A stretch of 27,545 bases of DNA from Paraphysomonas bandaiensis (lineage: Eukaryota > Protista > Chrysophyceae), in the NCBI GenBank assembly GCA_965644295.1, contig CBFFRP010000656.1, positions 1 through 27,545 of the forward strand. The letters run 5' to 3'. The position numbers were made by a program, and so were the translations under genes. The notes beneath the pieces are model-generated. The model was not told the DNA's origin. It saw only the letters and a program-made list of their open reading frames with translations, and did no database searches. This document shows, in pieces, positions 1 through 21,186 of this stretch. Position 1 is the first letter of the stretch. Each line of letters opens with the position of its first letter.

Positions 1-42
1 ACGTACTTGTATACATAACAGTCAGACAGACATATGAGCGCT

Positions 43-540: not shown

Positions 541-575
541 TATATAATATATGTTATATAATAATTTAAAATTAA

Positions 576-749: not shown

Positions 750-868
750 ATATAATAAGTGTATATATTTTTTTACAGGATAATAGGGAGTAAATACGGC
801 ATGTCTATATATAGTGTTAAACAGGTCTGTTGTTCCGTCTATCTGTTGTAATTGTTCGGTGTTTAAGT

Positions 869-946
869 CAGGGTCGGTATATCGTTTGGTTAATAGGGTT
901 GGTTGATCGTTTGGTTAATAGGGTCGGTTGATCGCTGGGGTTAATA
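869..946. repeat. 25-bp tandem repeat (ATCGTTTGGTTAATAGGGTYGGTTG), about 3 copies
   Basis: Copies at 881-905 and 906-930, partial copies at 931-946 and 869-880, inside the long divergent intergenic region. Confidence 0.8.
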
Positions 947-1434
947 TGTATAGTATTATTTTATTTTGATTGCATTTTTTTTGACATTTTTGTTGAAAAT
1001 ATTTATTTTGGAATTTATTTTTTTAGAAAAAAGTTTTTTTTAAAGAAAAATGTTGTAAAAAATGTAGTGTATACAGTTGCAAAATTTGTGAAAATAAGAT
1101 TTTTTTTGCATTTTTTATTGTGAAAGGTGACACGACATTTTTTATGTAAAAAAGTGTATAAAAAAATGTAATGTACAATATTGGAAGCACTTGTACGTGA
1201 TACACAGCGATACCATAGGGGTAAGGGTCAGTATAAATTAATAGTTTTTATGGTCACGGTTAACACGGCTAGGGTCGAAGACCCCCCCCCCTCTCTCTGT
1301 GTGTGTCTCCAACTGAAATATTAAAAGACTATTCCGTTTTTTTTCAAAATGTGTGTTGATGAGATCACAAGCCGAATAATAAAACATTGTATAAAAATTA
1401 TTATTCCATTAATTTTAATAGCAATATAATATAT

Positions 1435-2280
1435 ATGTCAACATTAGCAGATATTAAAAAACAACTTGGTATTAATGAAAAATTAACATCAGTATCAAAG
1501 AAGAAAAAGAAACATAATAATTTTAGGGATAATGTACCACAACACGAGCATTATAATTATATGGCCGATATCATGTATTTGCCTACTGCTAAATTTGGAT
1601 ATAAATACCTTTTAGTATGTCTTGATTTAGCCAATAATGAGTTTGATATGGAGCCTATGAAACATAAGGACGCGGATACAACACATAAGGCAATAAAAAA
1701 GATGTTTAAGCGTGAGTATCTAGATAAACCTAAATACTCTTTAACAACTGACGCAGGTACAGAGTTCCGAGGTATATTTAAGAAATGGTTATATGAAGAT
1801 AGTATTTATCATAAAGTAACAGTACCAGGCAGACATAAGCAGATGGCACCAATAGATAATTTAATTAATCAATTAAACAGCTTGTTTAATGGAATAGCAA
1901 ATAAATATGAGGAGGAAACAGGAAAGCCTTATAAACAGTGGACTGATCATATTGACGAAATACGTATATTATTGAATAAGTCCCGTAGAAAGAAACTTGA
2001 CCCCGATAAATATGAATTGCCTACAACAACAACAAAAAAAGGCAAATTAATAAAACCTAAATTTAAAATCGGTGATAAAGTCCATGTTATATTAGATAAA
2101 CCTAAAGATGCATTAAATAAGGTTCAATCTGGTAAGTTTAGAACTGGAGATTATCGCTTTGATTCTAAAGTTAGGGAAATAGAACAGATATTAATATATA
2201 GTGGTAAAGTATTATACCGTTATATGGTGTCTGGTATTAAGAATGCGTCATACTCAGCGGAGGAGTTAATTAAAGCTTAA
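1435..2280 (+). CDS. Polinton/virophage-type retroviral (rve) integrase
   Basis: YMADIMYLP..YKYLLVCLD, LTTDAGTEF, QMAPIDNL (third acidic residue appears to be D), and PKFKIGDKV C-terminal motif. First ATG is at 1435 after TATATAT. Confidence 0.88.
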   Translation: MSTLADIKKQLGINEKLTSVSKKKKKHNNFRDNVPQHEHYNYMADIMYLPTAKFGYKYLLVCLDLANNEFDMEPMKHKDADTTHKAIKKMFKREYLDKPKYSLTTDAGTEFRGIFKKWLYEDSIYHKVTVPGRHKQMAPIDNLINQLNSLFNGIANKYEEETGKPYKQWTDHIDEIRILLNKSRRKKLDPDKYELPTTTTKKGKLIKPKFKIGDKVHVILDKPKDALNKVQSGKFRTGDYRFDSKVREIEQILIYSGKVLYRYMVSGIKNASYSAEELIKA

Positions 2281-2295
2281 TCAATCTCTCCGAGC

Positions 2296-3534
2296 CTAAC
2301 GGGTCTCTCCAATATCTCCGAGCCTTTCAGGTTTCTTGATAACACTTTCCCATCTTAAATAACCTGTTGTACCTGCTTCGGGTTCTATCTTCCTATTTTT
2401 CATTTTTTCATCTTTGTTACATTTAAATGTCACATTGTCCGTATGTATTCTTATTACGTCATCTATACCGCCATATATTGCTGTTTCTGCCATTCTATTA
2501 CGTGCGAACGATGACATAAACGATTTTATACGCGCTTCACCCATTTTATAGGGGTCTTTAGCTGAATATAGTTTATAATAATCTTCTGTAGGTGTTATAT
2601 GATGGTCTAATACTACATAATCACTTTTTAGTGTTGGTCCTACATCTAAACCCTCTTTTTTTATGTCTGAATATGTTTTATATATGGCTTTATAACTGGT
2701 TAACTGACCCCATGCAGAGCTTAATAAGTGTTTTAATAATTTGTTTTTAGGGTATTTTTTACGTAATTTAGTCAGCTTATTTTTCCAATTACCAAAAACA
2801 AGCGACCCTTGCACTAAATCTGCCTCATCATATACATAACAGTTATTTTGATCTTTATCATAAAATTCAAACTCAAAATTAAACGTGTCTTTATATTTCC
2901 ATGCGAATTGAACCGAATAATGGGTATATAAATCTTTTTTTGAGAATGAAAATATCTTTTTAGCGTGTGGATTCTTAGACGTGATTCCGACGAAATAAAA
3001 ACCATATGGCAAATTTTCACCATCAGAAATTATTTTTTCTGTATCAAGGGCCATAGCTTTACCTTTTTTAGTGGGTACTTGAAAAGTTTTAGCAGCTAAA
3101 ATAGTTGGGTAATACTGTTTATAATCATATCCAAAACATAGCCCTTCATATTTCTCGCAATACATTAAAGGTCCATTATTACACATTGTAAAATAATGAT
3201 GTTCTGTTTTACCTATTTTACTAAATGTTATTTCCTTTACATTTTTAAACTTATTCGTTTTCATGCGTTTATATGTATTTCTCACTGCGTATGAATGAGA
3301 AACATAATTAGAATAGTCTATAGTAAGAAAATTTTCAGGGTCCTTTAGTTCATCGCACCACTTTTTAAAATCCTCTGCGTATCTTTTTAAGTCTTCGTCA
3401 GTTGGTTCATATCCTTTCATCAATTCAAAGCTGTGATGTTCACTAGGATATTTATTTATAGTCTTAAATTCTTTAATGCTTGTGTCAAATATTCTAAAAC
3501 CGGAAAGCAAACGACAAAATAATATATAGCTCAT
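2296..3534 (-). CDS. Shortened/divergent protein-primed family B DNA polymerase
   Basis: Motif A GYDYKQYYP, motif B KHLLSSAWG, motif C RIHTDNV; only 412 aa with no recognisable exonuclease motifs. Confidence 0.8.
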   Translation of the reverse strand: MSYILFCRLLSGFRIFDTSIKEFKTINKYPSEHHSFELMKGYEPTDEDLKRYAEDFKKWCDELKDPENFLTIDYSNYVSHSYAVRNTYKRMKTNKFKNVKEITFSKIGKTEHHYFTMCNNGPLMYCEKYEGLCFGYDYKQYYPTILAAKTFQVPTKKGKAMALDTEKIISDGENLPYGFYFVGITSKNPHAKKIFSFSKKDLYTHYSVQFAWKYKDTFNFEFEFYDKDQNNCYVYDEADLVQGSLVFGNWKNKLTKLRKKYPKNKLLKHLLSSAWGQLTSYKAIYKTYSDIKKEGLDVGPTLKSDYVVLDHHITPTEDYYKLYSAKDPYKMGEARIKSFMSSFARNRMAETAIYGGIDDVIRIHTDNVTFKCNKDEKMKNRKIEPEAGTTGYLRWESVIKKPERLGDIGETR

Positions 3535-3568
3535 TAATATATACTATATATTATTTTTTAAATATTTA
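3535..3568 (-). promoter_or_regulatory. Conserved upstream motif TATTTAAAAAAT(A/T)AT...TATATTA-ATG (also at 3920-3951, 4207-4240, 5852-5884)
   Basis: Near-identical motif directly before the ATG of four consecutive minus-strand genes. Confidence 0.75.
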
Positions 3569-3589
3569 ATTTTTTAATTTTTTAATTAT

Positions 3590-3919
3590 TTATTTTTCCA
3601 TAAAAACAGATATGTCAATAAATTCAAACTTCTCAAATTTATCCATTTCCTCAACTGTGCCTTTATAATAATTTTCAAAATCCTGAACCCTTATATTATA
3701 GCTGTTATACCCTTTAAATGTAAAGTATCTATGACCATTTAACGCTCTAACCATTGTATTGGCATCTTCGGGTAAGTTTTCCTCAATCATATCATGTAAA
3801 AAGTACATATCAGGAACGTCTAATTCTTTCCCTTTCTTTTTATGTCTAAATCTGATCGTAATTTCAACTGAGTTTGTAAAGTCCTTCTCATCAATCTTTT
3901 CAAATTTATATTTGTCCAT
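3590..3919 (-). CDS. Hypothetical viral protein, 109 aa
   Basis: Intact ORF preceded by the shared TATTTAAAAAA...TATATTAATG motif. Confidence 0.75.
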   Translation of the reverse strand: MDKYKFEKIDEKDFTNSVEITIRFRHKKKGKELDVPDMYFLHDMIEENLPEDANTMVRALNGHRYFTFKGYNSYNIRVQDFENYYKGTVEEMDKFEKFEFIDISVFMEK

Positions 3920-3951
3920 TAATATATACTATATATTAATTTTTTAAATAA

Positions 3952-4206
3952 TTAAATTTTTATTTTTTTAATATCATAGCTATCTATATTATTAATATCA
4001 TAAATTTTTATTCTGTTAATCAGTCGCTTTAATGATGGATGTAAGTATTTACATGTTGTACGTGACTCACATAAAGCGTTAAGTTTCCTAGCTTCTGAAT
4101 ATTGTATATCATATTCCTGTGCTATTGCCTTATAGGATGTAAAGTTTTGTGATGTAATCAGATTATTATTATTATCATATATTTCTACTATAAATTTATC
4201 TCTCAT
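3952..4206 (-). CDS. Small putative helix-turn-helix DNA-binding protein, 84 aa
   Basis: FTSYKAIAQEYDIQYSEARKL fits an HTH (NUMOD1-like) pattern; shared promoter motif upstream. Confidence 0.6.
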   Translation of the reverse strand: MRDKFIVEIYDNNNNLITSQNFTSYKAIAQEYDIQYSEARKLNALCESRTTCKYLHPSLKRLINRIKIYDINNIDSYDIKKIKI

Positions 4207-4255
4207 TAATATATATTTATATATTAATTTTTTAAATAAATTATTTTTTATTTTT

Positions 4256-5851
4256 TTAAATATTTATTCCGTAAGTTTTCATTATATCCTTTACTGTCTT
4301 CTGACTTACACGGGGTGTTTCATCTTCATCATCATCTTCATCATCATCTTCATCTGTATCTTCATCTGTATCTTCATCTGTATCTTCATCTGTTTTATCG
4401 CTTTTTTTATTGCTAATCTTTTTAATAGCGCTTGCAATAGTATTAGTATTATTACACTGATCACTGTGTTTATCACTTTGATTACACTGATCACTGTGTT
4501 TATCACTTTGATTACAACGTTTTTTAATTTTATCTTTAATATTATATTCTACATCAGGGCCATCATCATATTCATCTAATTAATGAACCCAATAATGTAA
4601 AGATTCAGAAACTTTATTTAATTCGTCTAATGTAACATTGTACACATTACGCCTATCTTTATTTTTTTTGTGAATAAAATTTAATTCACTCATGACCTTA
4701 TTAAAATCAATTGTATGTTTAACTGGTTTAATATTATTTTGAGTGCAATACTGGATATAATGGTTAAATATTTCTTTAACAAGTATATTATTTATATCCA
4801 ATCTCTTTAATATAAATTCATCCTTTAAAAACATTTCAACGCTTCCCAATCTCTTTGCGTATGCATCTAATTTGTTTTTTGTGATGGGGAAATTTTGACT
4901 ATAAAATTTTTCTGTGTTGTATTCCATTAAATAACAGTAAAAAGCATGTCCTACCTCGTTATTAAAGCATAGATTACGTAGCCATCCAAAATATTTTAAG
5001 TCATTGCGTTTTTTACAACAAACATCACAAATAAAATACCTTCTTCCGCATTCCTCATTTAAACTATAATTTGCATTGATTAAGTAATTATTAATATTTG
5101 CAGCCTGATATGTTGCCTCATGCTTTTGATTTATTATATAAACGTCGCTCGTCGTATATCGTTTTAATTTAGTATTGATTGCGTCCCAGTCAGCCCTGCT
5201 TTGTTTTTCTAATTCTTCAAAATATACAAATAATTTACCTCCTAGATCTGAATTAAATTTAGATGTCAACACGTCCGCGCCAGCCTCTAAACACAGGTCA
5301 CGGCCAAGTACGTAAGTATTCATAAATAGGGATATGGTTGATTTACCTATGCCCTGAGGGCCTTTTAAAAATATAATGGATTCATTTTTATTACCCTTTG
5401 TCATATTGGCAAACCACTTTAATAAATATTCATATTGTGCCTGATCATCAGAAGCCAATATTTCTTTAATATATGATAAAAACGCCTTAACACCTTCCTT
5501 ACTCTTATCATCAAAATCTTCATATGGTTTATAGTCGTGTGTAAACTGAGCGGCTAAATTTAATTTCTTTTTATCAGGGAATATACCTTTGCCAAGCTCA
5601 TAAACCATTTTACGAAGCCCTTTAAATTCAGTGAAATAATATTTTGCTATCCGTTTATCCATTCTGTTAAAATACGTTTCTTTAATTTTTTTGTGTTCCA
5701 TAATGCTAAATGTTTTATGTCCTGTTCTATATGCATGTGCACCGCTTGTAAGTGGGAAAAAATAATTTGTTACATAAGCTTTGGACTGTTCATAAGTCAG
5801 GTTATCAAGGTGTTCTAAATCAAACTCTTCAAAACTCTCTTTTGTACTCAT
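4256..5851 (-). pseudogene. D5-like superfamily 3 helicase with one internal TAA (4580-4582) and an acidic C-terminal tail
   Basis: Walker A GPQGIGKS, Walker B FVYFEE, motif C YLINAN, GRRYF arginine finger. The frame continues past TAA (HYWVH*LDEYDDGP...) for 107 more codons to TAA at 4256. Confidence 0.82.
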
Positions 5852-5934
5852 TAATATACAAATATATATTATTTTTTAAATAATAAATTTTTTAATTTTT
5901 TTTTTTTTTAAAAATCTAAAGGTTTTTTATAAAT

Positions 5935-7221
5935 TTAATATTGCAATGTTGCAAAACCGTTTTCAATTAAAATGACTTGATCAAAATAAGCGTATGTGTC
6001 TATGCGTGCGGACACAGTGGGGGCACTTGAGGAAAAACGAGGCATAAAAAATATGTCGTCAGTACTTGAGTTATAACCCTGGTATACTGTTTCCATGCCT
6101 GAGCTGCTGTAACTTTCTAAATCTAAACCTAAATAAAAGTTGGATGATGCTGCACACCCGTTATAATCGGCTGCTGTCTCGCTATTGGCTGCTGACGCTT
6201 GCATATCATAAGTATTTATATTAATGCTTGGTTCATGATTCAAATCGCTTACGCTTCCAATTGCTCTGATCAATTCGCCGAAAAATTCAGGAAGGCAACT
6301 AGGTGCTTTAGTTGGTACGGTCTTACTACCTAATCTAACACTGTATGACTCTAGACCGAAATGATTTGATGACAGAGGGAAATAGGTGACTTCTCCAGCG
6401 TGTTTATCGCGCATACTGAAAAATAGAGATCTTAAAGAGTTATATTTAGCGGGTACGGGAACACTAAGTTCAACGTTAGCGGCAATATTTCCAGTATGTG
6501 AATAATTTCTGTAATCTTGTACAACCCACCTTAAAGGTCCATTTGATGCCAAATTAATTTTATTCATTGCGTCATCTGATAACTCCATAAAATTACAAAC
6601 ATATTCAACGTCATTAATAGCTATTGAATCTATGGCTTTATCGCAACAAATGCCCTCTAATGGATTATTAACCAGAACTATTTCTAGACGTAAAGGCGCG
6701 CCGGTCATTGCGAACAGTGGGATATATTTATCACTGTAGCTTAAAAAATTCATTATTGGTACTGTATAATATCGTTTAGTTGTACTGCCCCCATTCACAA
6801 CTTGTGTGAATTCATTAAGTCTTTCACCAACAATTAAACCCTCGTTTGTGCTTGTTGCGCTGTCAACAATACTGAAACTTTCCGTTCCTGTTAAAATTGT
6901 ATGTTTGTTAATAAAAGAGTCGTTGGACTGCTGCAAAGCCATTAACTGACCAACTAGATTATTATAATTCTGAATATCTGAAAGTAAAGTAGAGCCATGA
7001 AATACTCGCACTCTAGAAATTAGGGAATGAATACCGGCCTTATCCAGTCTAACGTATTCCGCTGTGGTCGCAGGGTCAGATGTTTCTGTGTTTACTATTA
7101 AGCTTAATTTTAAAAGTGAATCAGCGCCCGACATTACGAGATTACGACCGGTAGGAACATTAATAATTATGGTCTCTCCTGCACCATATGGCCCTAAACC
7201 ATTCTGTGGAGCTATATATGG
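5935..7221 (-). CDS. Major capsid protein of Polinton-like virus type, 5'-truncated
   Basis: Frame is open upstream of the 7134 ATG (YIAPQNGLGPYGAGETIIINVPTGRNLV) with no Met before the junction. HSLISRVRVFHG, IQNYN, YIPLFAM, LRLEI and FYLGLDLE are typical of PLV MCPs. Confidence 0.8.
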   Translation of the reverse strand, partial: PYIAPQNGLGPYGAGETIIINVPTGRNLVMSGADSLLKLSLIVNTETSDPATTAEYVRLDKAGIHSLISRVRVFHGSTLLSDIQNYNNLVGQLMALQQSNDSFINKHTILTGTESFSIVDSATSTNEGLIVGERLNEFTQVVNGGSTTKRYYTVPIMNFLSYSDKYIPLFAMTGAPLRLEIVLVNNPLEGICCDKAIDSIAINDVEYVCNFMELSDDAMNKINLASNGPLRWVVQDYRNYSHTGNIAANVELSVPVPAKYNSLRSLFFSMRDKHAGEVTYFPLSSNHFGLESYSVRLGSKTVPTKAPSCLPEFFGELIRAIGSVSDLNHEPSININTYDMQASAANSETAADYNGCAASSNFYLGLDLESYSSSGMETVYQGYNSSTDDIFFMPRFSSSAPTVSARIDTYAYFDQVILIENGFATLQY

Positions 7222-7374
7222 AAGAAATTAGTAAAAAATATTATAAATAATACTTTTCACACTGTTATTAACTTCATAGTTACTTATTGTGCATAGTTAT
7301 ACCCTTTTCCGACCATCACCAAAAATTTCACCAGGTTTTACATCAAAACCCAGGTTTTGGTATTACCTCGACTT
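7222..7374. mobile_element. Orphan end of an AAGTCG-type TIR DNA transposon
   Basis: Ends ...CCCAGGTTTTGGTATTACCTCGACTT, similar to the TIR ...GACCAGGTTTTTACCTACCATCGACTT at 15020-15046. Authentic RT coding sequence starts right after it. The left limit is approximate. Confidence 0.7.
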
Positions 7375-8891
7375 TTTTGCTTCAATACATCAGGATGAAG
7401 GAATAGTGTACCAAGATGATGTGGCCATTCATTCCAGGACTTTTAAAGATCACTACAGAACCTTGGGAAAGGTGTTCCGATGTCTGGAAGCAAGAGATCT
7501 GACATTCAAGAGGTCGAAGATGCATATAAACCATCCACGGATCGCTTTCTTAGGATATATCATCGATGAACATGGGAAATACCCGAATCCCGAAGCAGTG
7601 AAAGCGATTAGGGAACTAGCATACCCACAAGATGTGAAGGCTGTGAGATCGTTTATAGGAATGACCATCTACTATCGAAATTTTATAGATGGTTATGCTG
7701 AGATGGTAGCGCCACTACATGAGCTGACGAGAAAAGGGGTAGTGATAACAGAAAGATGGGGAGAGCGTCATGAAAAGGCGGTAGACGAGTTAAAAGAAGC
7801 GTTGACGACTGCGCCCTGCTTGATGTTAGTTGACAACCGAAAACCATTTGAGATCAGAGTAGATGCCTGTAGGAAGGGACATGGAATGGGAGCAGTAATG
7901 CTGCAGCCAGATGAAGAAGAGAATAGACGACCAGTTGGCTATTGGAGTAAAGGATTGACGGCGACGGAGAGAGAATATGCGCCGACGGAGATAGAGTGCA
8001 AGGCATTACATGACTGTTTGATGTACTGGGATGTGTATGTAAGGGGGGCGTTAGAGGTTGATGTGTATACCGATCACAATTGCCTGGTATACATGTACAA
8101 GGGACAAACGGCTTCTAACAATGGAAGGTTGATGAGATATCTACTGGATTTGATGGGTTTAAGTTTTAGACTACACTATAAGCAAGGAACGAAGCATATG
8201 GATGCGGATGCAGTGTCAAGGCTACTACAACGAGGGGAAGAACCAGTATACCTTACTGCTGATGATCTAGAATGGGATAAAGGAACGGTAACAGAGGAAG
8301 ATCTATTGTTGGCTAAAGACTTAGAGATGAAGAGACGTAAGATGATAGAGAGGGCACAGAAGAGAAAAAAGAAGACACCTGAGAGGAGTCAGGATAAAGA
8401 AAAACAAGAGAACAAAGATGAAGAAGAAGTGATCAAGATAATAAATGCACTGACTAGGAGAAGGAATATGGGAAGTAAGATGGAAGGTGAAGAGAATATG
8501 AAGAAGTATTTGAAGAGGTTTGGAAAATCGGATAGAGTGTTGAGACCAAAGAAGAAAGGAATAGAGCCGGTGAGGGAAGCACCACATAGGGCCGATTGGG
8601 AGACGTTGGATAGTCCAGAAGATTTGAGTGATATGAGACGGAAGAGAAAGAAGGGATATAATAGAGTGAAAGTGTTGAAGTCGACAATCGAAGGAGCAGG
8701 CGAAGGACTATTCGCGACGAAGTATATGAAGGAAGGGTCCATAGTGTGTGATTATGAGGGTGAGAGACCATCGCAGGATGAAATAGAAAAAGAAGAGTAT
8801 GATAAGGATTACGTCTTTTCAGTACCTATGGGGGGAGGAGAGTATGCATATATAGACGCTAGAGACAGGAATAGTTGTTATGGGAGGTATT
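7375..8891 (+). pseudogene. pol: Pol A part 1: RT C-half, RNase H, charged linker, SET domain N-part
   Basis: VYQDD, FLGY, VRSFIG; RNase H VDAC/EIEC/YTDH/DADAVSR; SET KSTIEGAGEGLFA, DYEG, YIDA, YGRY. The first ~29 codons of the tracked ORF (7289) come from the transposon end. Confidence 0.9.
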
Positions 8892-9171
8892 AAGTCGATG
8901 GTAAGTAAAAACCTGGTCTAAGTACTAGAATCTGGTCAAACTACTACTTTTGTGTACGAATATGTAAAACGAACATGGAGAACGTGTTGTGATGAGTGCA
9001 TATCGTCTTGGAATCGCTTTGTGTTACTGTGTTGCATTATATTTTAAAAGGATATTTTATTCTGGCCGTATTTCTGAGTACTATAAGTGTAGTTACGTAA
9101 CTACTTATAATCAATAATCATTATTGCTTTTTATAAAAACAAATTACATAATAATATATATATAACATAAT

Positions 9172-9401
9172 ATAACAATTATCACTACCTTCGATTTCTT
9201 TTCCCACTGATAACAACATTAAAATACCATATATAATGTTCCTGTATCTCTCAATTTCTCACTCTCACTGACAATAACCATTTCATAATATATAAACAAT
9301 TATCACTACCTTCGCTTTCTTTTCCCAACGATCACATTACTACCATCTAATGCCCCTGTATCTTTCCATTTCTCACTCTCACTGACAATAACCATTTCAT
9401 A
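9172..9401. repeat. Imperfect ~120-bp tandem duplication downstream of the transposase
   Basis: ACAATTATCACTACCTTCG...CTCACTCTCACTGACAATAACCATTTCATAA occurs twice. Confidence 0.75.
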
Positions 9402-9458
9402 AGTAGGTCGTCGTGTATTCTTTGAAGTTGTTCTGACAGTTTCTAGATTACAAAAAAG

Positions 9459-12400
9459 TTAATTAACACTAATAACTATAACATGCGACGTACCTTTGCA
9501 TGGCTTCAGAAATCGTTGTTTCACTCCTTCGTCTGTTCCATGCAATGCCTGAATGTACTTGATGTCGTAAGTGCCGTTCCTATTTACTGATTGCACAGTG
9601 GCAACTAGCCCATGAGTGGTTCTCACTTTCTGGCCCACTTCAAAACGAAGTTCACTGAAATTTACTCCACCACCATCCTCCAAATATTCAGTCAAGTCAG
9701 TCAAATCGTCTCCACATTCGTCGGAACTGTCATTGCAATCATCAGCAAGAAGTGGTGTAGTAGAGAGCGATTTCTTTGGAACGGTTTTCTTCCTACTGGT
9801 AGTATTCTTTGACTTCCTCACAGATTTTTTTCTAGGAGGACCATCAGGTTGAGCTTTGGCAGTTAGTCCAGCATCAGACACATCATTTCCGTCCACATCT
9901 TCTACAATACGTCTTGCGGGCTGACCTTTCTTATTACCAGAATGTCTTACAGATGAAGTAGATTCCACAACTCTCATTGGAGGAATGGTAGTCCCACACT
10001 TTAATTTCCGACTTACTTTCTCCTTGGGTCCAACTTCATATTCCGAAATAGTAGGACCGTTGAACAAGACATCGAAAAAAGGAATGTGCAATGGATTCTC
10101 TGCAATATAGTCAGTCGCAATATTCGTCTTAGGAGTTACTTCGTCACGCCACTTAATCCAGTCTCTGGCAACAGCGGGGTTTTTATCCTTGTACGTGTTT
10201 ATCATACGGTCGCAGCAATCCGTGATGATCTCACGAGAGCCTTTTATGAAAGGGTCAACAGTTATTTGGTGAGACTTGGGGGGAAGGGACTTCAAAATAA
10301 GCAGAGGCTCCTCAGTGTCGAGCGGACGTTGAGTTACCCTCGTCAACTGCGGAATCAAACCGGTGATGTTCTCTTTCTCTCCAGTCGGGCAAATGACATC
10401 TTTCTTTGGGTCATCAACAATTTCAATAACTTCCTGCTGAGCATATGCCTGGTAAGTGGACTTCACGAAATGCGGATATCTGTCGCCCTCGGTGTCACCT
10501 ACTCGTTCAAATGTAAATTGCAATTGCGTCCAATTGGTTTTGGCAAAATTGGTTCTCACTTTCTGGCCCACTTCAAAACGAAGTTCACTGAAATTTACTC
10601 CACCACCATCCTCCAAATATTCAGTCAAGTCAGTCAAATCGTCTCCACATTCGTCGGAACTGTCATTGCAATCATCAGCAAGAAGTGGTGTAGTAGAGAG
10701 CGATTTCTTTGGAACGGTTTTCTTCCTACTGGTAGTATTCTTTGACTTCCTCACAGATTTTTTTCTAGGAGGACCATCAGGTTGAGCTTTGGCAGTTAGT
10801 CCAGCATCAGACACATCATTTCCGTCCACATCTTCTACAATACGTCTTGCGGGCTGACCTTTCTTATTACCAGAATGTCTTACAGATGAAGTAGATTCCA
10901 CAACTCTCATTGGAGGAATGGTAGTCCCACACTTTAATTTCCGACTTACTTTCTCCTTGGGTCCAACTTCATATTCCGAAACAATTGGTTTTGGCAAAAT
11001 AGCCTAAGCTAAGATCTATGAATGGTGCAACCCAATCAGCATAATTAGGGAATGCAAATACATCAATAACTTTCACATCATCAAACTTTTCAAACGCCAT
11101 CATAATCATTGTCTTAAATTCTGAAGGGGAGTAAACGAACTCATTTCTCAACAAAGTCCACAACAATGCAAATAACGCATCTATATCTTCATGAGTGTGT
11201 CCAGGAAGGAGTCTTGTCAATACCACTTTTGACACCAAACCACACGCAACAAGTAAATAACAGATGGCTAAATATAAGACATTCGCATTCTCAGACCCTC
11301 CATCAATTTGATGAAATATCGTGTTCGGAAGTCTTCCTTCTAGGTATTGCTCTTCCAAACTGAGTAGCCACGTATGGACATAATAGCTAGCATTCACAGA
11401 TACATTTGCAAAACTCCTGTACATTCTGATATTGCGACCATGCATAAGAATACCTTGTAAGTGCTGCTTGATATGCTGAGAAGGCATTCTACTGTGTCCA
11501 AACCAGGGCAAAAGACACCTATTCTGCTGCATACCGTCAGTGATTGTGGACATGTACTTCCATTTCTGATCAAAAGCAAGTTGTCGCCGACTATAGTACG
11601 CTTCGCGTTCCCCCATGTAAGTTAGACGATGCAAAATGAAAAGCATTGTGACTTCTTGCCTCCCACGGGAATCATTAAAGCTTCTTCGCAATTCTGACAA
11701 CGCCGAGCAGAGGTTGCATTTCCCACAACAGTGTTTAAACTTTCGAATTTTGACATGCGGAAAACAGTCTTTCCAAACTTGCAAGAACTGCTTAATCGTC
11801 AAAGGTTTCATAGCACCATCACCGTATGACTCAATATCGTGTTTATATTCATCATAAATTTCCTTCTTAGGTATAGGCTCCAGGTGCAATTCTTCGCAGC
11901 GATTTGGGGGGTTATCACCCACAAGTTTGAAATAGTATCCCATCCATGCACTTGAAGTTAAAGATTGCACCGAATTTGGAAGGCTTGCGCGGCCATACTG
12001 TTGACGGGAGAGGGATATTCCAAAGTGCTGACAGAATTTGCTAAGGTTTTGATCATTTACACCAAGTGTTCTTGTAGATGTCCGATCAATAAAATCCTTG
12101 GCTGTATTTCTCTCTCCTGACTTCAATCGACAGACAAGAGAATCAGTGTACCAATGAGAAATTCTGTACGCTGCTTCAAAAGCTTCACGGCAAATATGAA
12201 CAGCCTCCGGTCCTTCGCCTAATTGATAGTTTATGAAGTACTTATTGGTAAGAGTGACACGCATCGGAAATCCCGCTATTTTGGCAAAGAGAAATTCCTT
12301 CTTCTCAGCTGGTTTCAAACGGGCTAAGTCATTGATACACTTGAAAAAGAGTTTCTTGGCCTCGAATTCGACACCAGGGTTTAAATAACGGTATATCACA

Positions 12401-12477
12401 CACCCTTCACAAGGACATGATATAACACAAACAAGGCAGCAACAAGCTTGAGTGTGAGTTTTCAGCATTGGCTTCAT
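9459..12477 (-). pseudogene. DDE transposase with C-terminal Tudor-like domain, frameshifted by a 451-bp internal insertion
   Basis: CGKCNLC, ITDGMQQ, QIDGGSEN, LPGHTHEDIDALF. The two tracked ORFs join as ...GYFAKTNWTQLQF... once the insertion is removed. A possible splice acceptor near 12488 suggests an upstream exon. Sola assignment is from motif recall. Confidence 0.8.
10550..10981. repeat. 432-bp copy of 9617-10048, flanked by a 19-bp direct repeat
   Basis: CAATTGGTTTTGGCAAAAT at 10531-10549 and 10982-11000. Confidence 0.92.
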
Positions 12478-12645
12478 TTGAAGTATTCTGAAGCAAAAAA
12501 AAATATCATCATCCAAAAAAATGACAGTGTGCAATCATATAAAATCATATATATCAGCACTGAAATATATACAGTTTACTGTATGATGAACAATCACATA
12601 ATATAATAATATGCATGTATAAAAACACAATACATTCTGCCACTC

Positions 12646-12861
12646 AGTCACTTCGTAGCGAGCCGTCGCTCAGCCCGGAAGGTATTCCTTGTTTGAAATG
12701 TATGTATCTTTATTAAAATCACTTAATCATGATATATAGTCACTTCGTAGCGAGTGCGCCGCTCAGCCCGGAAGGTATTCCAATTCATGTTTGGTAAGTG
12801 ATGCAAACAGCTTCTTGTGTGTGAGTTATTGCCGTCATAGCGAGCTGCCGCTCAGCCCCGA
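12646..12861. repeat. ~43-bp GC-rich motif, two copies plus a partial, in the transposon intergenic region
   Basis: AGTCACTTCGTAGCGAG...CGCTCAGCCCGGAAGGTATTCC at 12646 and 12738, partial at ~12838. Confidence 0.75.
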
Positions 12862-13324
12862 CAGACAATATCAACGCAACACAAGCGCATGTCATCGTAT
12901 ATAATATACATATATAATAATATAATACTCTAGCAGCAACTAAACGAACCTTGAAATGAAACACACTCCCAAATCTCAATTGTTCTATAACTATTCAACA
13001 GAGTAAACCAGAGTAATATACATGCGCCATTGCTTGCTATTATTATTATGTATGAACAATCCGCTTGTCATGCATGCGTCTGTCTTTCAAAATAAACTCA
13101 CGCACCCTCATTTCAAAAATAGATACGGTGTTGTGCGTATACGTGTATACCTATACTATATACCGGCATAGTGTTCGCAAAAATATCTTTTTTATGCATT
13201 TGAAATGTGTGCAGCAGTATGACTACATATCTATCTGATGTAATTTTAAAATAAATATATACTTAATTTGGTTAAACCAAGACTTGTTATAAGAGAGAAG
13301 TATATATAAATATTGTCAACAACA

Positions 13325-14861
13325 ATGGAGGATGGGTTGACGAATTTTGCTTTTGATTCTGATGACGATAACTCCGACGAACGAATACAACTTATTACAT
13401 ATGTGCAATGTGTAAAGCAACGTTTAATTCAAATGAAAAAGGGGTTTCCATTTTGAAGTTGCAATGTGTTAGTTGTTGCAGGAAGTCTAGATTAGATATG
13501 CTTGCTGCACTTGGTGAATCCGAAGTTGATGATAATTCTGAACTGCTTGATGAGAGTGCTGTGCCACAAGAAAGTGGTTCCAGTATTTTGTCACCAGAGA
13601 GAGGCAACAAAGACGAAGAGGGTAATGAGATGGGAAGCATCCTGCACCAGTTTAATTGCAATGAGGACTCCTTCACAGTTAACATTGGTGGTTACAACCA
13701 AACATACTGCCGCAAGAAGTTCATTTCAGATGGTGGTTCTTCTGTAAAGTGTTTCTTGGATTTGGAAATGCTATCGATGATCCCTTTATTGTTCAATTAC
13801 TATGTACTTTCAGCTGTACTTGGCAAAGACGGTTCATATGTTAACTATTCTCGCTGTTGGGTGAGTAAAAACTCTGATGGAAAACAATACGTTGTTCTCT
13901 GTTACCTTCGGACCAAATGTAACAAATGGCGCTGTGACAGTGTTCTGTATGATCCCACTGAAAGTGGAAAAATTTTTCTGCTTACAGGTTTATCAAAAAT
14001 GAAGCAGTACACTTTCCTTCCCGAAGTATCTCTCGACCATGACTGGGCGAAGTCAATTTTGGAAACCTATCTCCGCGACCCAAAGAACAAACTTGCATGG
14101 GACCCACAAGGAGATGTTCCGAACAAGGATGAGACGGGAAACTGGATTCTTGATGGCTGGGATCCTGTAGAAGAAGGGTTGAAAGCAGCATTTGATCTCA
14201 GCAGCAAGAAGAGGCTTAGAAAGCGAAAGGCCTCTGTTCGATTTGCGGATGAAAATTTCAGTTCTGGCACTGGCAAGAAACCGAGAAAAAAGCAAACAAA
14301 CCAAGTCAGCGTGCTGTTGCGGTACGTATATACAACTGAATTAATTTTGTTATAACTGACCATAAAATATCTTGTGTAATACAGAAGAAGGCTGTTAGTG
14401 CAGTTGCTGCAACGGAAAATGATGAGAGAGATCGTGGCGAAGATGATCCTGTTATCATTGTCAAGCCAGCAGAGCCAAAGCGTCAACATCAAGCAAGAAA
14501 CACTCTTCCAAAGAAACCAGATATTCAAGAAGAATTGGAGGCCCAGAAACGGCGAACTGCTGAATTGGAGCAGTTGCTGATGAGTAAGACTCAGCCAACG
14601 AAAGCTTCTGCCCCTGCTGCTGTTGTGGGTGATAACTCTTTGTCTACGCAGACTACTGAAGTTCATCAGCGGACACCCTCTGCTGTAGGTCACAGTTACG
14701 AAATGACTCAACCGCCAATTTCTCTTCATGCGATGAATGCGATTAGATATGTTGAAAATGTAAAATTTGCAGATGCATTGCGCATGGCAGATCAGAATGC
14801 CTACTTGCAGCGGGAAAATATTATTTTGAAACAGTCAATGTTTGGTAGTGGCAATCAGTAA
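13325..14861 (+). pseudogene. Second, divergently transcribed transposon gene of unknown function (CxxC..CxxC N-terminus, one intron, two apparent frameshifts)
   Basis: ATG at 13325 (MEDGLTNFAFDSDDD), main ORF 13408-14321, GTACGT...CAG intron 14322-14384, open exon 14385-14861. Frameshifts are needed near 13380 and in the A-run near 14290. Confidence 0.55.
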
Positions 14862-15048
14862 GTAGTAGTAGTGATGTAACGATTTCGTAGTGACATAATC
14901 TTATTATAATATAATAAATGTTTAGAATTAGTCCAATTATCGTGTTATTTGCTAGTATATACCAGACTTTCTCAAATATACCCTATATATATAGTACACA
15001 TCACCTGGTCAAAGTACTTGACCAGGTTTTTACCTACCATCGACTTAT

Positions 15049-16373
15049 TGCAACGACCCTATTGATGATTCGTTGGTGAATGCGAGAGTAAAAGTGAAGG
15101 GAAAGAAATTGTTGGTGATAGCGACTACAACGATTAGACCGGGAGACGAAATCTTTTTATCATATGGAGAGGAGTATTGGAAAGATCGGCTGCATTTGTT
15201 GACATCAGAACAGTCTGCCAAGATTCAGCAAGAGAGTAGGAGGAAGAAGATCCAGGAACAGAGGGAAGAACGGAGTAAGAAGACGGTCGAAGAGACATCA
15301 GGAAATAATGGTGAAGAGCGAGTAGGGGAGGCAGCAAAGACTAAAGCGATAAGAGTCAAGGAGGCGGTACAAGGCCTAAGCGAGTTGGAAGAAGAGAAAT
15401 ATGTGTATGATAATCAGCTGCAGTGTCCGGAGTTGGCCGAAAAGTTGCAGTATTTGGTGGGAAAGAAGTTTATAGATGATGAGAATGGGCAACTGTATGA
15501 GGTGCAGAAGATTTTCTATTCACATTCGGAGAAGGCAGTGTTGGGATATCGTAGGTCGTTGACAGGAAAGGCGCACAAGTATGACGATGACCCGTTCTAT
15601 GTACATGGACCTTCAGGACTTTTGATGCTGACAGACTTATATGATGTAGAACATGAGGATGATGATGCTAAGTGGCCGACGACACCTTTACAATGGAGAG
15701 CGGAACAGATGAGAGATGAACAGTTAAGAGAATGGAACAAAGAGATGAACGAAGGAGAAGTTAAAGAAGTGGAAAAAGGTTTGGTCATAAGCAAGCGCGA
15801 TATGGGTGAAGGAGTATATGGAATCCATAGACGATGGACACCTGCGGGAAGGACTATATGGCAAAGATGGGTACCTGAGAGGTTGAAGCGTACATGTATT
15901 AAGATCTTTCATGAAGGTCTAGGACATGCAGGAGCAACGAGAGCAGTGAATACCATGGCTCTGCATTACTATGGGGAAAACATGAAAGAAGAGTTGGGTG
16001 TGCACTGTAGGACTTGTATATCATGTAAGCTTAGACAGGCGTACTACAGGAGGCCAAAAGTCCCGACAATGGAGTATCCGGAGGTTAAGGAACCCATGGA
16101 AAGATTACATATCGACTTGGTAGTGGACCTTCCAGAGACAGATAATGGCAACAAGCATATATTGGTGTGTAAGGATTCTAAGAGCAAGTTTGTATGGTTA
16201 TTCCCATTGGCAGATAAGGAAGCTGAAAGTGTAGCGCAAGCTCTAGTGAAAGGGGTGTATAATGCATTTGGAGTACCAAAGATGGTGGTATCCGATCGAG
16301 GAAGGGAGTTTAGAAACCAGTTGGATACGAAATTAGCTGAGTTGTATAGAATTCACCGAGTATGTACTACACC
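15049..16373 (+). pseudogene. pol: Pol A part 2: SET C-part, unknown domain, integrase zinc finger and core
   Basis: CNDP..VNA..IATTTIRPGDEIFLSYGEEYW; HEGLGH...CISC; LHIDL; SDRGREF. Confidence 0.9.
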
Positions 16374-18405
16374 AAGTAAACATTATGCAATCGTGGGATT
16401 TTTTTTTCCCACGTTTTTAGGAGTATTTGAGGAGTATTTGAGGAGTATTTGAGGAGTATTTCTCGTATACCGGTATATTGTACTATACTATACTGCTGTA
16501 CTGTATATGTATTCGTTTGTACGAGTAGTACTCTACTATGCGCATAGAGGTGTATGTATGTGTGCGAGGAGGATATTTGAATTCTTGTGCACAGATCAGC
16601 ACCCACACACATAGCACAGACTCCTCTGATATGCGGTCTCATCTCCAGCAGAAGAAGGTTGTTCACTATTAATCAGGTTAGTTTTCAGGCGTGAAGTGGT
16701 CTGTTGCGTGTGTCGCATGCTACCAACTCACACTCTCTGTTCACATGTGTCTGATCAGCACTGTGCGCACTGATGTGAGTTGAATGGTATAAGTGGGTCT
16801 TGGGGGCGCAGTGGGGTGCAGGTCTTCTCTCCGGTAACACGGATATGAGATATAAAGGCACCTCCCTAAACGGGGATTTGTCAGCACTTAACGAGAGTTT
16901 TGTTGCTGGCAATTAAGACGCGCTTCTCTGCTCAGCCTTGTGCTGGGTTAGAGTGTAAGACGACGGCCCTCGCATCACTGTACGTGAGCCAGTTTTCTAG
17001 ATTAATGGCAAAACCGCATATAGCTGTACATTCCCACTGTACCTGTAGTGTATGACGTGCATGTCAATATATATTATGTCAATACTTATGATTGACACTG
17101 TCCTAATACACTGCTTTGTTGCGCCTGTATCGTAGATCGGTCAGCCATATATTAGCGAGCAGGAGTCTAAACGTGATCAGGCCGCATTGCTTCTTACCCC
17201 CTGCGTAAAGTACACGTGTGATCTCTTGTTGAGCTAATAGCCTGCTCTATGCTCATCTTGTACTGAGAGTCAATAGTGTATGACGTGTATTGCTTGTGTG
17301 ATGGGTATATTATGTTGTACACTTATACTGCTGCTGCGTGTGTTAGCTGAGTGAATATAGTATGCTCAGACAGGGTACATCGAGAGATAGTGTATGGCGT
17401 GTATTATTGGTTGTGTGATGGGTATGTTGTATATGGTTATGCTACACTTATATTCTCTCGTTCAGGCAGGGTGTATCGAGAGATAGTGTATGACGTGTAT
17501 TGGTTACACAGTGTTTATATGTTGTACAGTCATACTACTGCTACGTGTGTTAGCTGAGTGAATATTTTAGTATGCTCAGGCAGGGTGCACCGAGAGATAG
17601 TGTATGACGTGCATTGGTTGTGTGATGGGTATGTTGTATATGGTTATGCTACACTTATATTCTCTCGTTGAGCCGAGTTCGTGGGAGAGGCTCATGTTGT
17701 ACTGGGAGACAATAGTGTATGACGTGTATTGGTTGCACAGTGTCTATATTATGTTGTACAGTCATACTGCTGCTACGTGTGTTAGCTGAGTGAATATAGT
17801 ATGCTCAGGCAGGGTGTATTGAGAGATAGTGTATGACGTGTATTGGTTGTGTGATGGGTATATGTTGTATATTGTTGTGCTACACTTATATTCTCTCGTT
17901 GAGCCGAGTGCATGCAAGAGGCTCATGTTTTACTGAGAGACAATAGTGTATCACGTGTATTGTTTGTGTGATGGCAATGGGGTGAACTACAGTTCAATTG
18001 AGTGAGAAAGTGATAAATATTCATGGACTTAGTGTGTGTTGTTCATACAGTGAAACTAAAGTTACATGATGTAATGTATTCATGATCGTACGTAAGTTGT
18101 ATTTTTAAATCACAAGTGGCTAGAAACAATGTAGCTACGAGTAGGGCAATGACTGCTGGCATCATGATGATCAATGGGTTGACAGTGGTAGTATGAGGGC
18201 AGATAACGTGGTTGCTGGTAACCAAAAAGGCGCTTCTGTTACATCCTATGAGACTTAAAATTATAATAAAATTAATATTTTTTGTTGTCTCTAACCCTAA
18301 TACCACCAATAGAATTGTTTCTTTAACATTTCTACTTAAATACTGTAAATACTCCTAAATTTCCCAAAATATCGTAAAATTCCCACGTTTGCATAATGTT
18401 TACTT
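16374..18405. mobile_element. Non-autonomous TIR DNA transposon, 2032 bp
   Basis: TIR AAGTAAACATTATGCAA(T/A)CGTGGGA; ACC duplicated at 16371-16373 and 18406-18408; subterminal GAGTATTT repeats at both ends; removal restores CTTP-QNPRSNG. Confidence 0.92.
17265..17975. repeat. Internal minisatellite-like array, ~100-120 bp alternating units
   Basis: ATAGTGTATGACGTGTATTGGTTG core recurs about 7 times with two alternating unit types. Confidence 0.85.
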
Positions 18406-18408
18406 ACC

Positions 18409-19091
18409 ACAGAATCCAAGATCTAATGGGTTGGTAGAGAATATGAACAAGACATTGAAGGATCAACTACACCATTACATTAATGCACGACAATCTGATT
18501 GGGATGTTTTCTTAACAACGGTGCAACTGATGTATAATTCAACGGTGAATGCTGCTACAGGATATACACCTTTTTATATGATGTTTGGAAGAGAGTCATC
18601 TACACCTGAGAGAGTGGGAATGTGTGAACTAGAGGAGCAGAATAGTGTAATGGGTGAAGAACGGGACGTAGATGAGGCTTGGGTAGATAAGTTAACTACA
18701 GCTTTGCAGTGGGCATGGGTAGTTACTACTCAGAGGACGAGGAACAATTGGTTGAGGATGAATAGAGACACCCACACTCATGCGGCAGAGATACGGCATG
18801 AAGAGGGAAGGAAGGATTGTAAGATAAGACATCTACCGTTTAAGGAGTACCAGGTTGGGGATCTATTCTTCAGAAGGAGATGTCCAGTAAGAGCATTTTC
18901 ATCGGCATCGGATAAAGAGAAATATAAGGTGTCCATGAAGCTACAACCAAGATTTGAGGGTCCATACAAGGTGACGAAGAGGATTAACCCAGTATTGTAT
19001 GACTATGATTAATGGTAAGACTGTAAGGGTACATGCGACTAATATGAAACCCGACAGTTATGTCGAGAGACCTATTCAGGTCTCGGATTAG
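18409..19091 (+). pseudogene. pol: Pol A part 3: integrase C-part with GPY/F motif; frameshift near 19005
   Basis: NPRSNGLVE, YNSTVNAATGYTPFYMMFGR, KLQPRFEGPY; continues in another frame as INGKTVRVHATNMKP...QVSD*. Confidence 0.85.
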
Positions 19092-19099
19092 GGGGGAAG

Positions 19100-19792
19100 T
19101 GTAGCAATCTTGGGTGTAGTGGAAATGGTGGGTTATAAGGTTGTTGTGATATGAGAGCCAAGGTGAAGTAGTATAAGAATAACATGAGATAAAAGGTAGA
19201 AGATGGTTAAGACAAGGTCACGAGATATGAGTATTAAGGCCAGATACAGGGTTGGAGTGTACCGGGACTATCCGTATATACGGACGTAACGGACGTTTAT
19301 TGTAGCCCGTACAGTATTATGGTAGTATGAGTAGCATGTAGACGTTATAGGAGACAGTATGGAGTAGATAGTAAGATGATAAGAGATTGCTGTAGGGATA
19401 TTTCTGGAAGTGGAAACTAGCTATTTATGGCTAAAAACCCATTTCTAGAACCGCTATGGAAAAATAGGCTAAGTTATACGAGTTTTTAGATAGGGCAGAA
19501 TTATAAGATAAAAGGATATATATAATCAGCACAGTTAAGTGTTAGTGAAATTAAGCGCTATCTATCTACCTACTATCCAGTGCACGCATGGATAAAGAGG
19601 ATATATATGTCTACTGATACCCATATGGATGACACTCAATCATCCGACATCGCCACATGTTCAGTGAAATATATCATAAATAAAGAAGTGATCTTAGTAA
19701 TAGTAAAACAATGTTGTGATTATTAGAGTGTAAGTAATGAACACGATAGAGTTCATTTTAAATGGTAAAAACTTCGTGTAACTCAAACTAGC
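19100..19792 (+). repeat. 3' LTR of element A (interrupted by element B)
   Basis: PPT AGGGGGGAAG followed immediately by TGTAGCAA; no partner LTR in the window. Confidence 0.7.
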
Positions 19793-21186
19793 TGTACACA
19801 AACCAGACTTGCTGGTTTGCTCCCAACAAAATGTATAATAAGGTATGAGTAAACACTTATTATTACTGTTAAATCACCTAACACGGCCAACGATATCCGC
19901 TAGATAACGCCGCGCAGTATTCCCTCTAAGAATAAAGGTCGCTGTTAAGACAGTGTCAAGTAACTTAAACAATGACATGCAAGGAATAACATATAGAATG
20001 GTACGCATCTACAGAATGAACCAAGTTCATTTTATATCACACACACCACACCGCATGCATTCTTGCATACACCGTGTATACCACACGTATTATGACAATA
20101 AAACAAAACTGAATAACAGCGTATGAAACTGAATAACTGCGCATAAAACTGAAATAAAACAATAGTGATAAAACTGAAAAACCGCTTATCTAAATAAGTA
20201 CTAGAGTACCGTATACTCTGTACTCGAGTATGTGCTATAAGACTTGTGCAATTCAAGACATAGACATTCCACTTTGCCCAAAGCTTACGGGTCTGCAAAA
20301 CACATGCCCAGACGTAGCTCACGCTTGGCAACTAAGACCCCGCTTGCTAAAGGTGCTTTTCCAAGCCTGCCAGTCTTTATACCGAGCTCAGAAACATGCT
20401 GTAAGTCTAAGTCTAAGCCTGGCAAGGTACGTAGGGGTCAACCTTCCCTGAAGGCTAGGAATCATGCACGCATACAGGCTTACAATGCTATGGCCATTGA
20501 ATTGGATCTTGAAGCGCTTTTGTCTCGGTGTCCAGAAGGCAACGCTAAAGGTGTAGTCTCAGTACCTTTCTGCCACACGTCTAATCCTGCTTCGTCGACT
20601 GAAGTGTGTCCCTTTTTCCTGGATTGGCATGCTGAACATGCTAATTCTGATAACCCCTTTGTCCACGTGATATCCGGTCCTAATGTTGCTAACCCTGATG
20701 GCTCTGGTTCCGAGAAGGGAGTGGGGGCTTCTATTGCTCTCGCTCCTAGTGATACTGTGCCTGTATGTTTCTATGTGGGTGAGTTGTATACTTGTGCTCG
20801 TAGACCTCCTCGTGGTCGTTATACTCTTGAGGTAGCACCTGGCAGTGGTATCTTTATTGATGCTGAATACGATTCCCGTGATCCTGCGTACCATATGTTC
20901 CATGCACCCACTGAATATATGCGTGTGCCTCCTAATTATGCTCGCTATATCAATACTCTTAGCGAGGAGGATTTGGCCGCGGGAAGGCAATTCAACTGCC
21001 GTTTTGCCGGTTGTCCCTGCGGTCATAATTGTATTGCTGTTTTTGTTACTCGCAATATAGCTGTTAATGAAGAATTGTTGATTCCGTATCCCTTGTTGCG
21101 TTGACTCTCAGTAATTAATTTCATTGTCTTTTAATGCCTTGTACTACTTGTTCTTAGAAGCTACTCTATAAACCCCTAGGGTTACA
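19793..21186 (-). repeat. 3' LTR of element B (1394 bp, TGTAAC...TGTACA on minus strand)
   Basis: PPT GGGGGGAAGAGGTAG (21187-21201, minus strand) abuts 21186; 19793-20176 matches 27162-27545. Confidence 0.9.
20304..21104 (+). CDS. SET-domain protein encoded inside the LTR, antisense to gag-pol
   Basis: EKGVGA, FYVGE, FIDA, YARYINT...NC, VTRNIAVNEELLIPY; basic N-terminus. First ATG is at 20304 (tracked start 20244 is TTG). Confidence 0.8.
   Translation: MPRRSSRLATKTPLAKGAFPSLPVFIPSSETCCKSKSKPGKVRRGQPSLKARNHARIQAYNAMAIELDLEALLSRCPEGNAKGVVSVPFCHTSNPASSTEVCPFFLDWHAEHANSDNPFVHVISGPNVANPDGSGSEKGVGASIALAPSDTVPVCFYVGELYTCARRPPRGRYTLEVAPGSGIFIDAEYDSRDPAYHMFHAPTEYMRVPPNYARYINTLSEEDLAAGRQFNCRFAGCPCGHNCIAVFVTRNIAVNEELLIPYPLLR

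Follow-up and report, generated by a model that had tools for sequence, protein, structure and literature searches.

A Ty3/gypsy Pol with an interrupted SET domain

The DNA analysed here (the window) is the whole of contig CBFFRP010000656.1 (C656; 27,545 nucleotides) of the chrysophyte Paraphysomonas bandaiensis, and the genome searched with it is the 62.5-Mb assembly GCA_965644295.1 of 669 contigs. The window holds a damaged Ty3/gypsy retrotransposon whose Pol polyprotein carries a SET domain between RNase H and integrase (Table 1). On the + strand, the open reading frame (ORF) at 7289-8893 encodes the end of the reverse transcriptase (RT), RNase H (RH), a lysine/glutamate-rich linker and the segment GYNRV...GAGEGLFA...CDYEG...YIDA...NSCYGRY, after which the Pol frame meets a stop at 8890. 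The same frame is back at 15049 as CNDP...VNA...PGDEIFLSYGEEYWKDR, and downstream of this point the SET remainder, a second charged linker, the integrase (IN) zinc domain and the integrase core follow in one frame. This is the arrangement of Ty3/gypsy elements, in which RT is followed by RNase H and then by an integrase that has an H2C2 zinc domain and a DDE core. In Pfam scans, the left part of the element matched RT_RNaseH_2 (91.8 bits), RT_RNaseH (82.8 bits) and RVT_1, the last at model positions 148-205 only, and it is 99.3-99.6% identical to sister copies on contigs C654 and C75.

Table 1. Features of the interrupted gypsy element in the window
Feature	Position	Strand	Basis or remark
Terminal inverted repeat of another, related DNA transposon	7350..7375	-	ends ...cctcgactt at 7375; resembles the inverted repeat of the 8892-15046 element
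Gypsy Pol fragment (C-terminal RT, RNase H, charged linker, N-terminal SET half)	7376..8891	+	Pfam
SET, N-terminal half (GYNRV...GAGEGLFA...CDYEG...YIDA...GRY)	8654..8890	+	Pfam SET model 1-56/105, 21.9 bits
Target-site duplication ATT	8889-8891 (left), 15047-15049 (right)	.	flanks the 8892-15046 element
DNA transposon with terminal inverted repeats, probably Zator/ISAzo13-like, within SET	8892..15046	-	6,155 bp; inverted repeats and target-site duplication
SET, C-terminal half (CNDP...VNA...PGDEIFLSYGEEYW)	15049..15192	+	Pfam SET model 74-105/105, 20.7 bits
Conserved module of ~100 aa (barrel) between SET and integrase	15376..15696	+	conservation across 10 SET-bearing gypsy sequences
Integrase zinc-binding domain and first part of catalytic core	15871..16373	+	Pfam Integrase_H2C2 37.9 bits, rve 41.3 bits
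Second insertion, 2-kb non-coding element with terminal inverted repeats	16374..18405	.	inverted repeat AAGTAAACATTATGCAA; ACC duplication at 16371-16373 and 18406-18408; splits integrase core
Rest of integrase (rve_3, Tf2-1-type SH3), stop at 19012, 3' non-coding end of element	18406..19657	+	Pfam

A natural uninterrupted copy of the element lies on C654 and is 99% identical to the window copy over the element. Its open frame runs for 1,005 codons to the contig end, with 980 amino acids from the first start codon to the stop, and encodes RT, RNase H, SET, integrase and SH3 in this order. The left flank of the interruption (8300-8891) maps to C654:18015-18606 and the right flank (15047-15700) to C654:17367-18017 on the minus strand. 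C654 is therefore the empty site: the two flanks are adjacent there and overlap in a single ATT at C654:18015-18017, which demonstrates the insertion without any manual joining. A preliminary description made from the letters alone had removed the transposon and one ATT to restore a SET domain, and these boundaries proved exact to the base, as judged by the target-site duplication (TSD), the empty site and the 27-bp terminal inverted repeats (TIRs) at 8892-8918 and 15020-15046 (one mismatch; 0 expected by chance). As it had also proposed, the domain is hidden in the window because the transposon splits it, and the two halves match complementary parts of the Pfam SET model. C654 was considered as the other allele of the window locus and rejected, since the flanks differ past 19657, where homology between the two stops, and since C654 lacks the 2-kb insertion. 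The two copies are paralogues, separated by 17 synonymous and 6 non-synonymous changes.

The window copy is dead, with a truncated 5' end and two interruptions, one in SET and one in the integrase core. In the sister copy on C75 and in the Pol of a second gypsy family (family 2, below), homology to the window breaks off exactly at 7375/7376; this boundary, together with the TIR found there, indicates that the 5' part of the gypsy element was removed by a TIR element. The 2-kb element in the integrase core is absent from C654, C247, C528, C133, C476 and C661. The preliminary description had seen the transposon that splits SET and had overlooked the cut, the second interruption and the dead state of the copy. 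All analyses of the intact domain were made on natural copies as they stand, neither mended nor merged into a consensus, and the window halves were kept separate.

Fold and active site of the SET domain

The SET domain of the C654 copy matched Pfam SET (PF00856) over the whole model (positions 1-105 of 105) with 43.9 bits (E 3.4e-11; cut-off 22.4 bits), so that a complete SET domain between RNase H and integrase, as the preliminary description had reconstructed, stands in one frame in a natural Ty3/gypsy Pol, and the profile search that it had suggested returned a match above the cut-off. The same domain scored 26.2 bits against Pfam PRDM2_PR, just below the cut-off of 27. By sequence, the nearest PDB entry was G9a/EHMT2 (E 3e-7), followed by GLP, EZH2, PRDM9 and SETD8; only the SET core of the gypsy domain aligns with G9a. 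An AlphaFold2 (AF2) model built from an alignment of 47 sequences reached a predicted local distance difference test score (pLDDT) above 90 across SET residues 1-150. Foldseek placed PRDM9 (4c1q) first (E 7.6e-8, root-mean-square deviation 2.3 Å over 124 columns), with further matches to SETD8, MLL1, G9a, SET7/9 and other PR domains; the probability was 1.00 for PRDM9, SETD8, MLL1, G9a and SET7/9, and PRDM5, PRDM3, PRDM2 and PRDM12 were the PR domains among the top structural matches. As modelled, the gypsy domain has a genuine SET fold.

The catalytic E...Y pair (E113 and Y118) is invariant in all 47 relatives, and G18, L19, Y34, G36, Y53, R78, D82, N90 and W123 are conserved in at least 90% of them. 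Both glycines of the GxG motif that binds S-adenosylmethionine (SAM), G16 and G18, are conserved. The RFINH(S/C) motif is not canonical and reads GRY.(N/Q)D: its Asn (N81) is N in 40 of 47 relatives and Q in 7, and where the canonical motif has His, 46 of the 47 have Asp. Thus, of the SET motifs listed in the preliminary description, GxG and E...Y are kept and RFxNH is not, with NH changed to (N/Q)D in the whole subfamily. With the SAM-binding glycines, the NH-motif Asn and E...Y all retained, the predicted active-site signature is intact.

No pre-SET or post-SET zinc clusters of the kind that defines the SUV39/G9a group were found around the domain; its flanks are K/E/R-rich linkers devoid of cysteine clusters. 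These are the charged linkers that had been described earlier, and AF2 draws long helices in them at 132-160 and 172-186, with confidence dropping to pLDDT 45-55 over residues ~160-200. The proposed likeness to the chlorovirus protein vSET holds in so far as both are minimal SET domains without zinc clusters, and it goes no further among the best matches, since vSET was absent from the best 60 PDB sequence matches and the best 50 Foldseek matches. Taken together, these features set the gypsy SET apart as a minimal SET subfamily of its own that has PR-like traits.

A gypsy lineage with a selected SET domain and a second conserved module

A search of the genome with the SET peptide gave 77 matches, most of them within open frames of 1,000-3,700 codons, and domain orders were read for a subset of these from Pfam scans of 3-5 kb loci. 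Three gypsy families have the order RT-RH-SET-IN. Family 1 comprises the window, C654 and C75. Family 2 (C476, C661, C339 and C463) has a SET domain 53% identical to that of family 1 (Pfam SET 52.5 bits), and family 3 (C432, C252, C201, C210, C119, C123, C238 and C191) one that is 39% identical to it (31.5 bits); the three families are mutually 39-59% identical. Sibling copies, whose lack of the domain would have spoken against the preliminary description, thus keep it in both close and diverged families. A Pfam scan of the 706 amino acids preceding RT in family 2 gave zero hits.

Between RNase H and integrase, Pol holds an insert of about 500 residues, made up of a charged linker, SET, a second charged linker and a beta-barrel module. 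The alignment of the three families shows two conserved islands in it, SET and the module of about 100 residues, and the linkers around them are variable and contain indels. The insert had previously been described as SET with charged linkers, both of which are present, and this second conserved module had been overlooked. Non-synonymous divergence (dN) between families 1 and 2 was 0.21 in RT-RH and 0.22 in the integrase; SET (0.39) and the module (0.33) diverged more, and the linkers most (0.5-0.8). Since synonymous divergence (dS) is saturated between families, dN/dS was not taken there, and the family 2 pair C476 and C661 (proportion of synonymous sites changed, pS, about 0.17) was used instead. 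In this pair, SET has 15 synonymous and 3 non-synonymous changes (ratio of the non-synonymous to the synonymous proportion, pN/pS, 0.06; Fisher p 4e-8), the module 11 and 1 (0.03; p 3e-7), the integrase 31.3 and 7.7 (0.07), and linker 2 has 5 and 7 (0.35). These counts indicate that SET is under purifying selection about as strong as that on the integrase, and the non-neutral evolution expected from the preliminary description is borne out. In addition, the common position of SET and the common barrel argue for a single acquisition of SET within gypsy.

The module is present in 10 of 10 SET-bearing gypsy sequences (the three families here and seven metagenomic clusters described below) and forms a small beta-barrel with pLDDT 81-93 in the long AF2 model. 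It had no Pfam hit and no Atlas neighbour (scores at most 0.81), and its best Foldseek match, at E 0.13, was not significant. Structural comparison with VIA-align gave Z of at most 4.9, with chromo, Tudor, BAH, CAP-Gly and KOW barrels as the best rows; such Z values are common for unrelated small barrels. A Tudor/chromo-like nature of the modelled barrel is a lead only.

Relatives beyond the genome and possible transcription

An exhaustive HMMER search of 1.84 billion representatives (E at most 1e-3) returned 1,975 SET relatives. The SET region of the 980-aa ORF had drawn no match in a word-indexed protein search, a null that is uninformative given these 1,975 relatives. Among the best 150, seven clusters have SET beside retroelement domains, which is a lower bound because short SET-only neighbours have no readable context. 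Three of the seven (P0016, P0018 and P0027) have RT-RH-SET-IN, and the other four (P0007, P0010, P0017 and P0054) have SET followed by integrase domains. All seven carry the barrel module, and all come from marine or other metagenome assemblies. SET and barrel thus stand ahead of integrase in three families and seven clusters, with the full order RT-RH-SET-IN wherever the sequence reaches RT and RNase H. Most of the nearest relatives are short SET-only proteins, and all 10 that were looked up sit on short metagenome contigs; one related SET fragment is labelled Symbiodinium microadriaticum, and a few relatives are host-like fusions of SET to PRMT5/DOT1 or a kinase (P0037, P0045 and P0115).

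Two of the clusters, P0016 and P0018, have an Exo_endo_phos (APE-like) domain upstream of the gypsy-type RT-RH-SET-IN in one ORF of about 2,500 amino acids, and at L045:2206-8475 Exo_endo_phos and RT-RH-SET-IN are encoded in adjacent genes. A LINE-type endonuclease (LINE, long interspersed nuclear element) in an integrase-bearing element would be unusual, and a fusion of gene models is possible.

In public data, 20 runs belonging to 15 studies contain near-identical copies of the C654 element, and three of these runs are polyA or cDNA metatranscriptomes. Marine contigs from these RNA libraries span the insertion point within an intact SET (L002 1452-1710 and 1464-1651; site 1501-1503), which suggests that the SET-gypsy element is transcribed.

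Insertions into the window copy and neighbouring features

The transposon within SET has at least six copies on other contigs that are 100% identical over the first 509 bp, and it is therefore young. Its only transposase-side domain is DUF7869 (82 bits in Pfam), in the ORF 10969-12534(-), and DUF7869 was found together with DDE_Tnp_ISAZ013 in one Atlas cluster. Zator transposons make 3-bp target duplications, and the 3-bp TSD and the 27-bp TIRs fit Zator. From the DUF7869 protein, the 3-bp duplication and the Atlas neighbours with DDE_Tnp_ISAZ013, the transposon is probably Zator/ISAzo13-like. In this account, a Zator-like transposon entered SET at ATT, a second TIR element entered the integrase, and a third removed the 5' end. 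From the sequence features of the three elements, a single transposon superfamily appears to have hit the window gypsy copy repeatedly.

Several further observations concern these elements. The ORF 9459-10997(-) of the inserted transposon contains a perfect 300-bp direct repeat (9617-9916 and 10550-10849, 933 bp apart), and degenerate tandem repeats of about 207-439 bp lie at 17191-17966 within the 2-kb non-autonomous element. The three different TIR elements, with ends at 7350-7375, 8892-8918 and 16374-16390, all start with AAGT within 10 kb, and AAGT-starting elements show 3-bp duplications wherever both ends are visible.

Elsewhere in the window, positions 1-6000 form an AT-rich block with 26-32% GC (about 40% elsewhere). 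Of two ORFs in it, one encodes an integrase of the rve type (1387-2280, +; 32.7 bits) and the other a primase-helicase of the D5/DUF5906 type (4580-5851, -; 54 bits). The block resembles an integrated polinton-like or virophage-like element.

Other SET-bearing elements

Two groups of LINEs in the genome have SET directly N-terminal of the APE endonuclease. One consists of C143, C146 and C477, with SET before APE; the other is abundant, with SET-APE-RT in one frame (for example C440), and its SET is 25% identical to the query SET. A SET tree of the 47 sequences has an unresolved backbone and gives the LINE SET a long branch, so that one and several acquisitions are not separable.

The window also has a second gypsy element, with a long terminal repeat (LTR) at 19792-20220 that is repeated at 27161-27545. 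Between this LTR and the end of Pol, on the opposite strand to Pol, a 286-aa ORF (20244-21104, +) ends in a divergent SET-like domain (FYVGE...IDA...ARYIN...NEELLIPY), which scored 19.6 bits against Pfam SET, below the cut-off, and E 4e-5 with 70% probability in hhalign against the SET alignment. Two further copies of this segment lie on C206 and C491. At G000:C505:58003-62733, a SET-bearing unit is repeated in tandem, with three SET matches at intervals of exactly 2,178 bp.

Discussion

The results point to a gypsy lineage whose Pol contains a selected SET domain, probably an active methyltransferase that travels with the integrase and acts on chromatin; we give this reading a probability of roughly 60%. 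In the proposed mechanism, SET would be produced within Pol as an active SAM-dependent protein-lysine methyltransferase and, since it adjoins the integrase N-terminus, would probably move with the integrase. Its substrates, in or close to the integration complex, would be chromatin proteins and most plausibly the tails of histones. Such methylation may help the element to select target chromatin or attach to it, or may establish the chromatin state of the new copy; for the barrel, a role as reader or tether is conceivable. The idea in the preliminary description that the element may mark its own new insertions in this way is conjecture, since sequence does not reveal activity, substrate or site of action.

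Several points weigh against this reading. The NH-motif His is Asp throughout the subfamily, and cofactor binding may differ. The domain lacks pre- and post-SET zinc clusters as well as any recognisable extension for binding a substrate, and so gives no basis for assuming histone specificity; because the barrel has no significant structural match, a reader role for it is a guess. Travel with the integrase hinges on where the protease cuts Pol. The contigs from RNA libraries may hold DNA carry-over. Finally, no complete family 1 copy was found in the assembly, and family 1 is low-copy.

A more far-reaching version, which we regard as tentative, would make SET and barrel an integrase-borne chromatin device, an active writer with a reader, that methylates histones at the integration site, either for targeting or for protecting new copies from silencing. 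In that case, LINEs and Helentrons would have gained minimal SET domains independently, and element-encoded histone methylation would be a recurrent transposon strategy.

The substitution in the NH motif raises the alternative that SET is catalytically inert and kept as a binding or scaffold module (histone-tail or SAM-dependent docking) that tethers the integrase in the manner of a chromodomain. The PRDM2_PR score just under its cut-off is consistent with this, as is the presence of PRDM5, PRDM3, PRDM2 and PRDM12 among the top structural matches, since the PR domains of these four proteins are weak or inactive enzymes. However, the invariant E113 and Y118, the conserved GxG and N81 are what is expected of an active site, beyond the needs of a mere fold; in addition, the best structural match is to PRDM9, an active enzyme that likewise lacks the NH-motif His. 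We consider an inert domain unlikely.

SET may also be active on a substrate other than histones, such as the Gag, integrase or RT of the element, or a host factor involved in restriction or silencing. When minimal SET domains lack histone-recognition modules at their flanks, as here, they often act on non-histone proteins; the same subfamily occurs fused to PRMT5/DOT1 or a kinase, and the LINE SET domains adjoin an endonuclease rather than an integrase, so that the common partner may not be integration chromatin. Against this, all named neighbours in sequence and structure are histone lysine methyltransferases, which is weak evidence since histone enzymes dominate the PDB. A non-histone substrate seems to us quite improbable compared with action on chromatin.

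That SET is a passenger is highly improbable, whether as a captured fragment of a host gene that does nothing for the element or as an artefact created by assembly or nested insertion: retroelements do occasionally transduce host sequence and the family 1 copies lie at contig ends, but SET stands ahead of integrase in three diverged families and seven independent metagenomic clusters, its pN/pS is 0.06, no TIRs or duplications surround the SET segment, and the element is present in reads from 15 studies.

Transposons are usually viewed as targets of histone methylation. If the reading of an active SET travelling with the integrase is true, retrotransposons with their own selected SET beside the integrase can write protein or chromatin marks themselves, which would parallel, at the level of proteins, the DNA methyltransferases known from retrotransposons of dinoflagellates and charophytes. 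The SET-gypsy lineage has a wide distribution, with near-identical copies in the marine samples of those 15 studies and related SET-gypsy sequences in metagenome assemblies, and the gypsy SET domain is small enough for direct expression and assay.

An LTR retrotransposon with an accessory domain is of a known kind. According to a review of accessory domains, which is itself about RNA helicases and DNA methylases, the well-known ones in LTR elements are the chromodomain and a DnaQ-like exonuclease; the review does not mention SET. We found no description of SET inside a retrotransposon Pol in the full-text literature, with most subscription journals and Repbase outside its reach. Within the known fold, the gypsy SET is 23-27% identical to PRDM9, SETD8 and G9a and has a G9a-like C-terminal YG..W motif; it differs from these enzymes in having (N/Q)D for NH, no pre- or post-SET and no zinc fingers.

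Other mobile elements offer partial parallels. In marine protists and algae, retrotransposons have repeatedly picked up methyltransferases for cytosine in DNA (de Mendoza et al. 2018, PMC5890265); these too are epigenetic writers, but they are DNA C5-methyltransferases rather than protein-lysine methyltransferases, and that paper does not mention SET. Orchid Ty3/gypsy elements carry an AlkB m6A demethylase domain and thus also have an extra enzymatic domain fixed in a gypsy lineage, but they differ in enzyme, in substrate (RNA) and in host group (PMC9289625). The Helentron and proto-Helentron rolling-circle transposons of Phytophthora have SET and OTU accessory genes, with a minimal SET protein of about 150 amino acids alongside OTU-like proteases (Thomas et al. 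2014, PMC4067079); these are likewise protist transposons with a minimal SET, but there it is a separate ORF of a DNA transposon, whereas here it is an in-frame domain of Pol. SETMAR (Metnase) joins SET and a DDE-type transposase, an enzyme of the integrase fold, in one polypeptide, as here; it is, however, a gene of the host into which a dead mariner transposase was captured (PMC2847698), and not a mobile element carrying SET. A further parallel is offered by the chromoviruses, which are also gypsy elements whose Pol has a chromatin-related accessory domain on the integrase, thought to couple integration to chromatin state. At the integrase C-terminus of the present element we found no chromo hit, only weak, sub-threshold Pfam matches to SH3_Tf2-1 and Integrase_p58_C. 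Chromoviruses have a chromodomain, a reader, at the C-terminus of the integrase, whereas the elements described here have a writer-type SET and a barrel on its N-terminal side.

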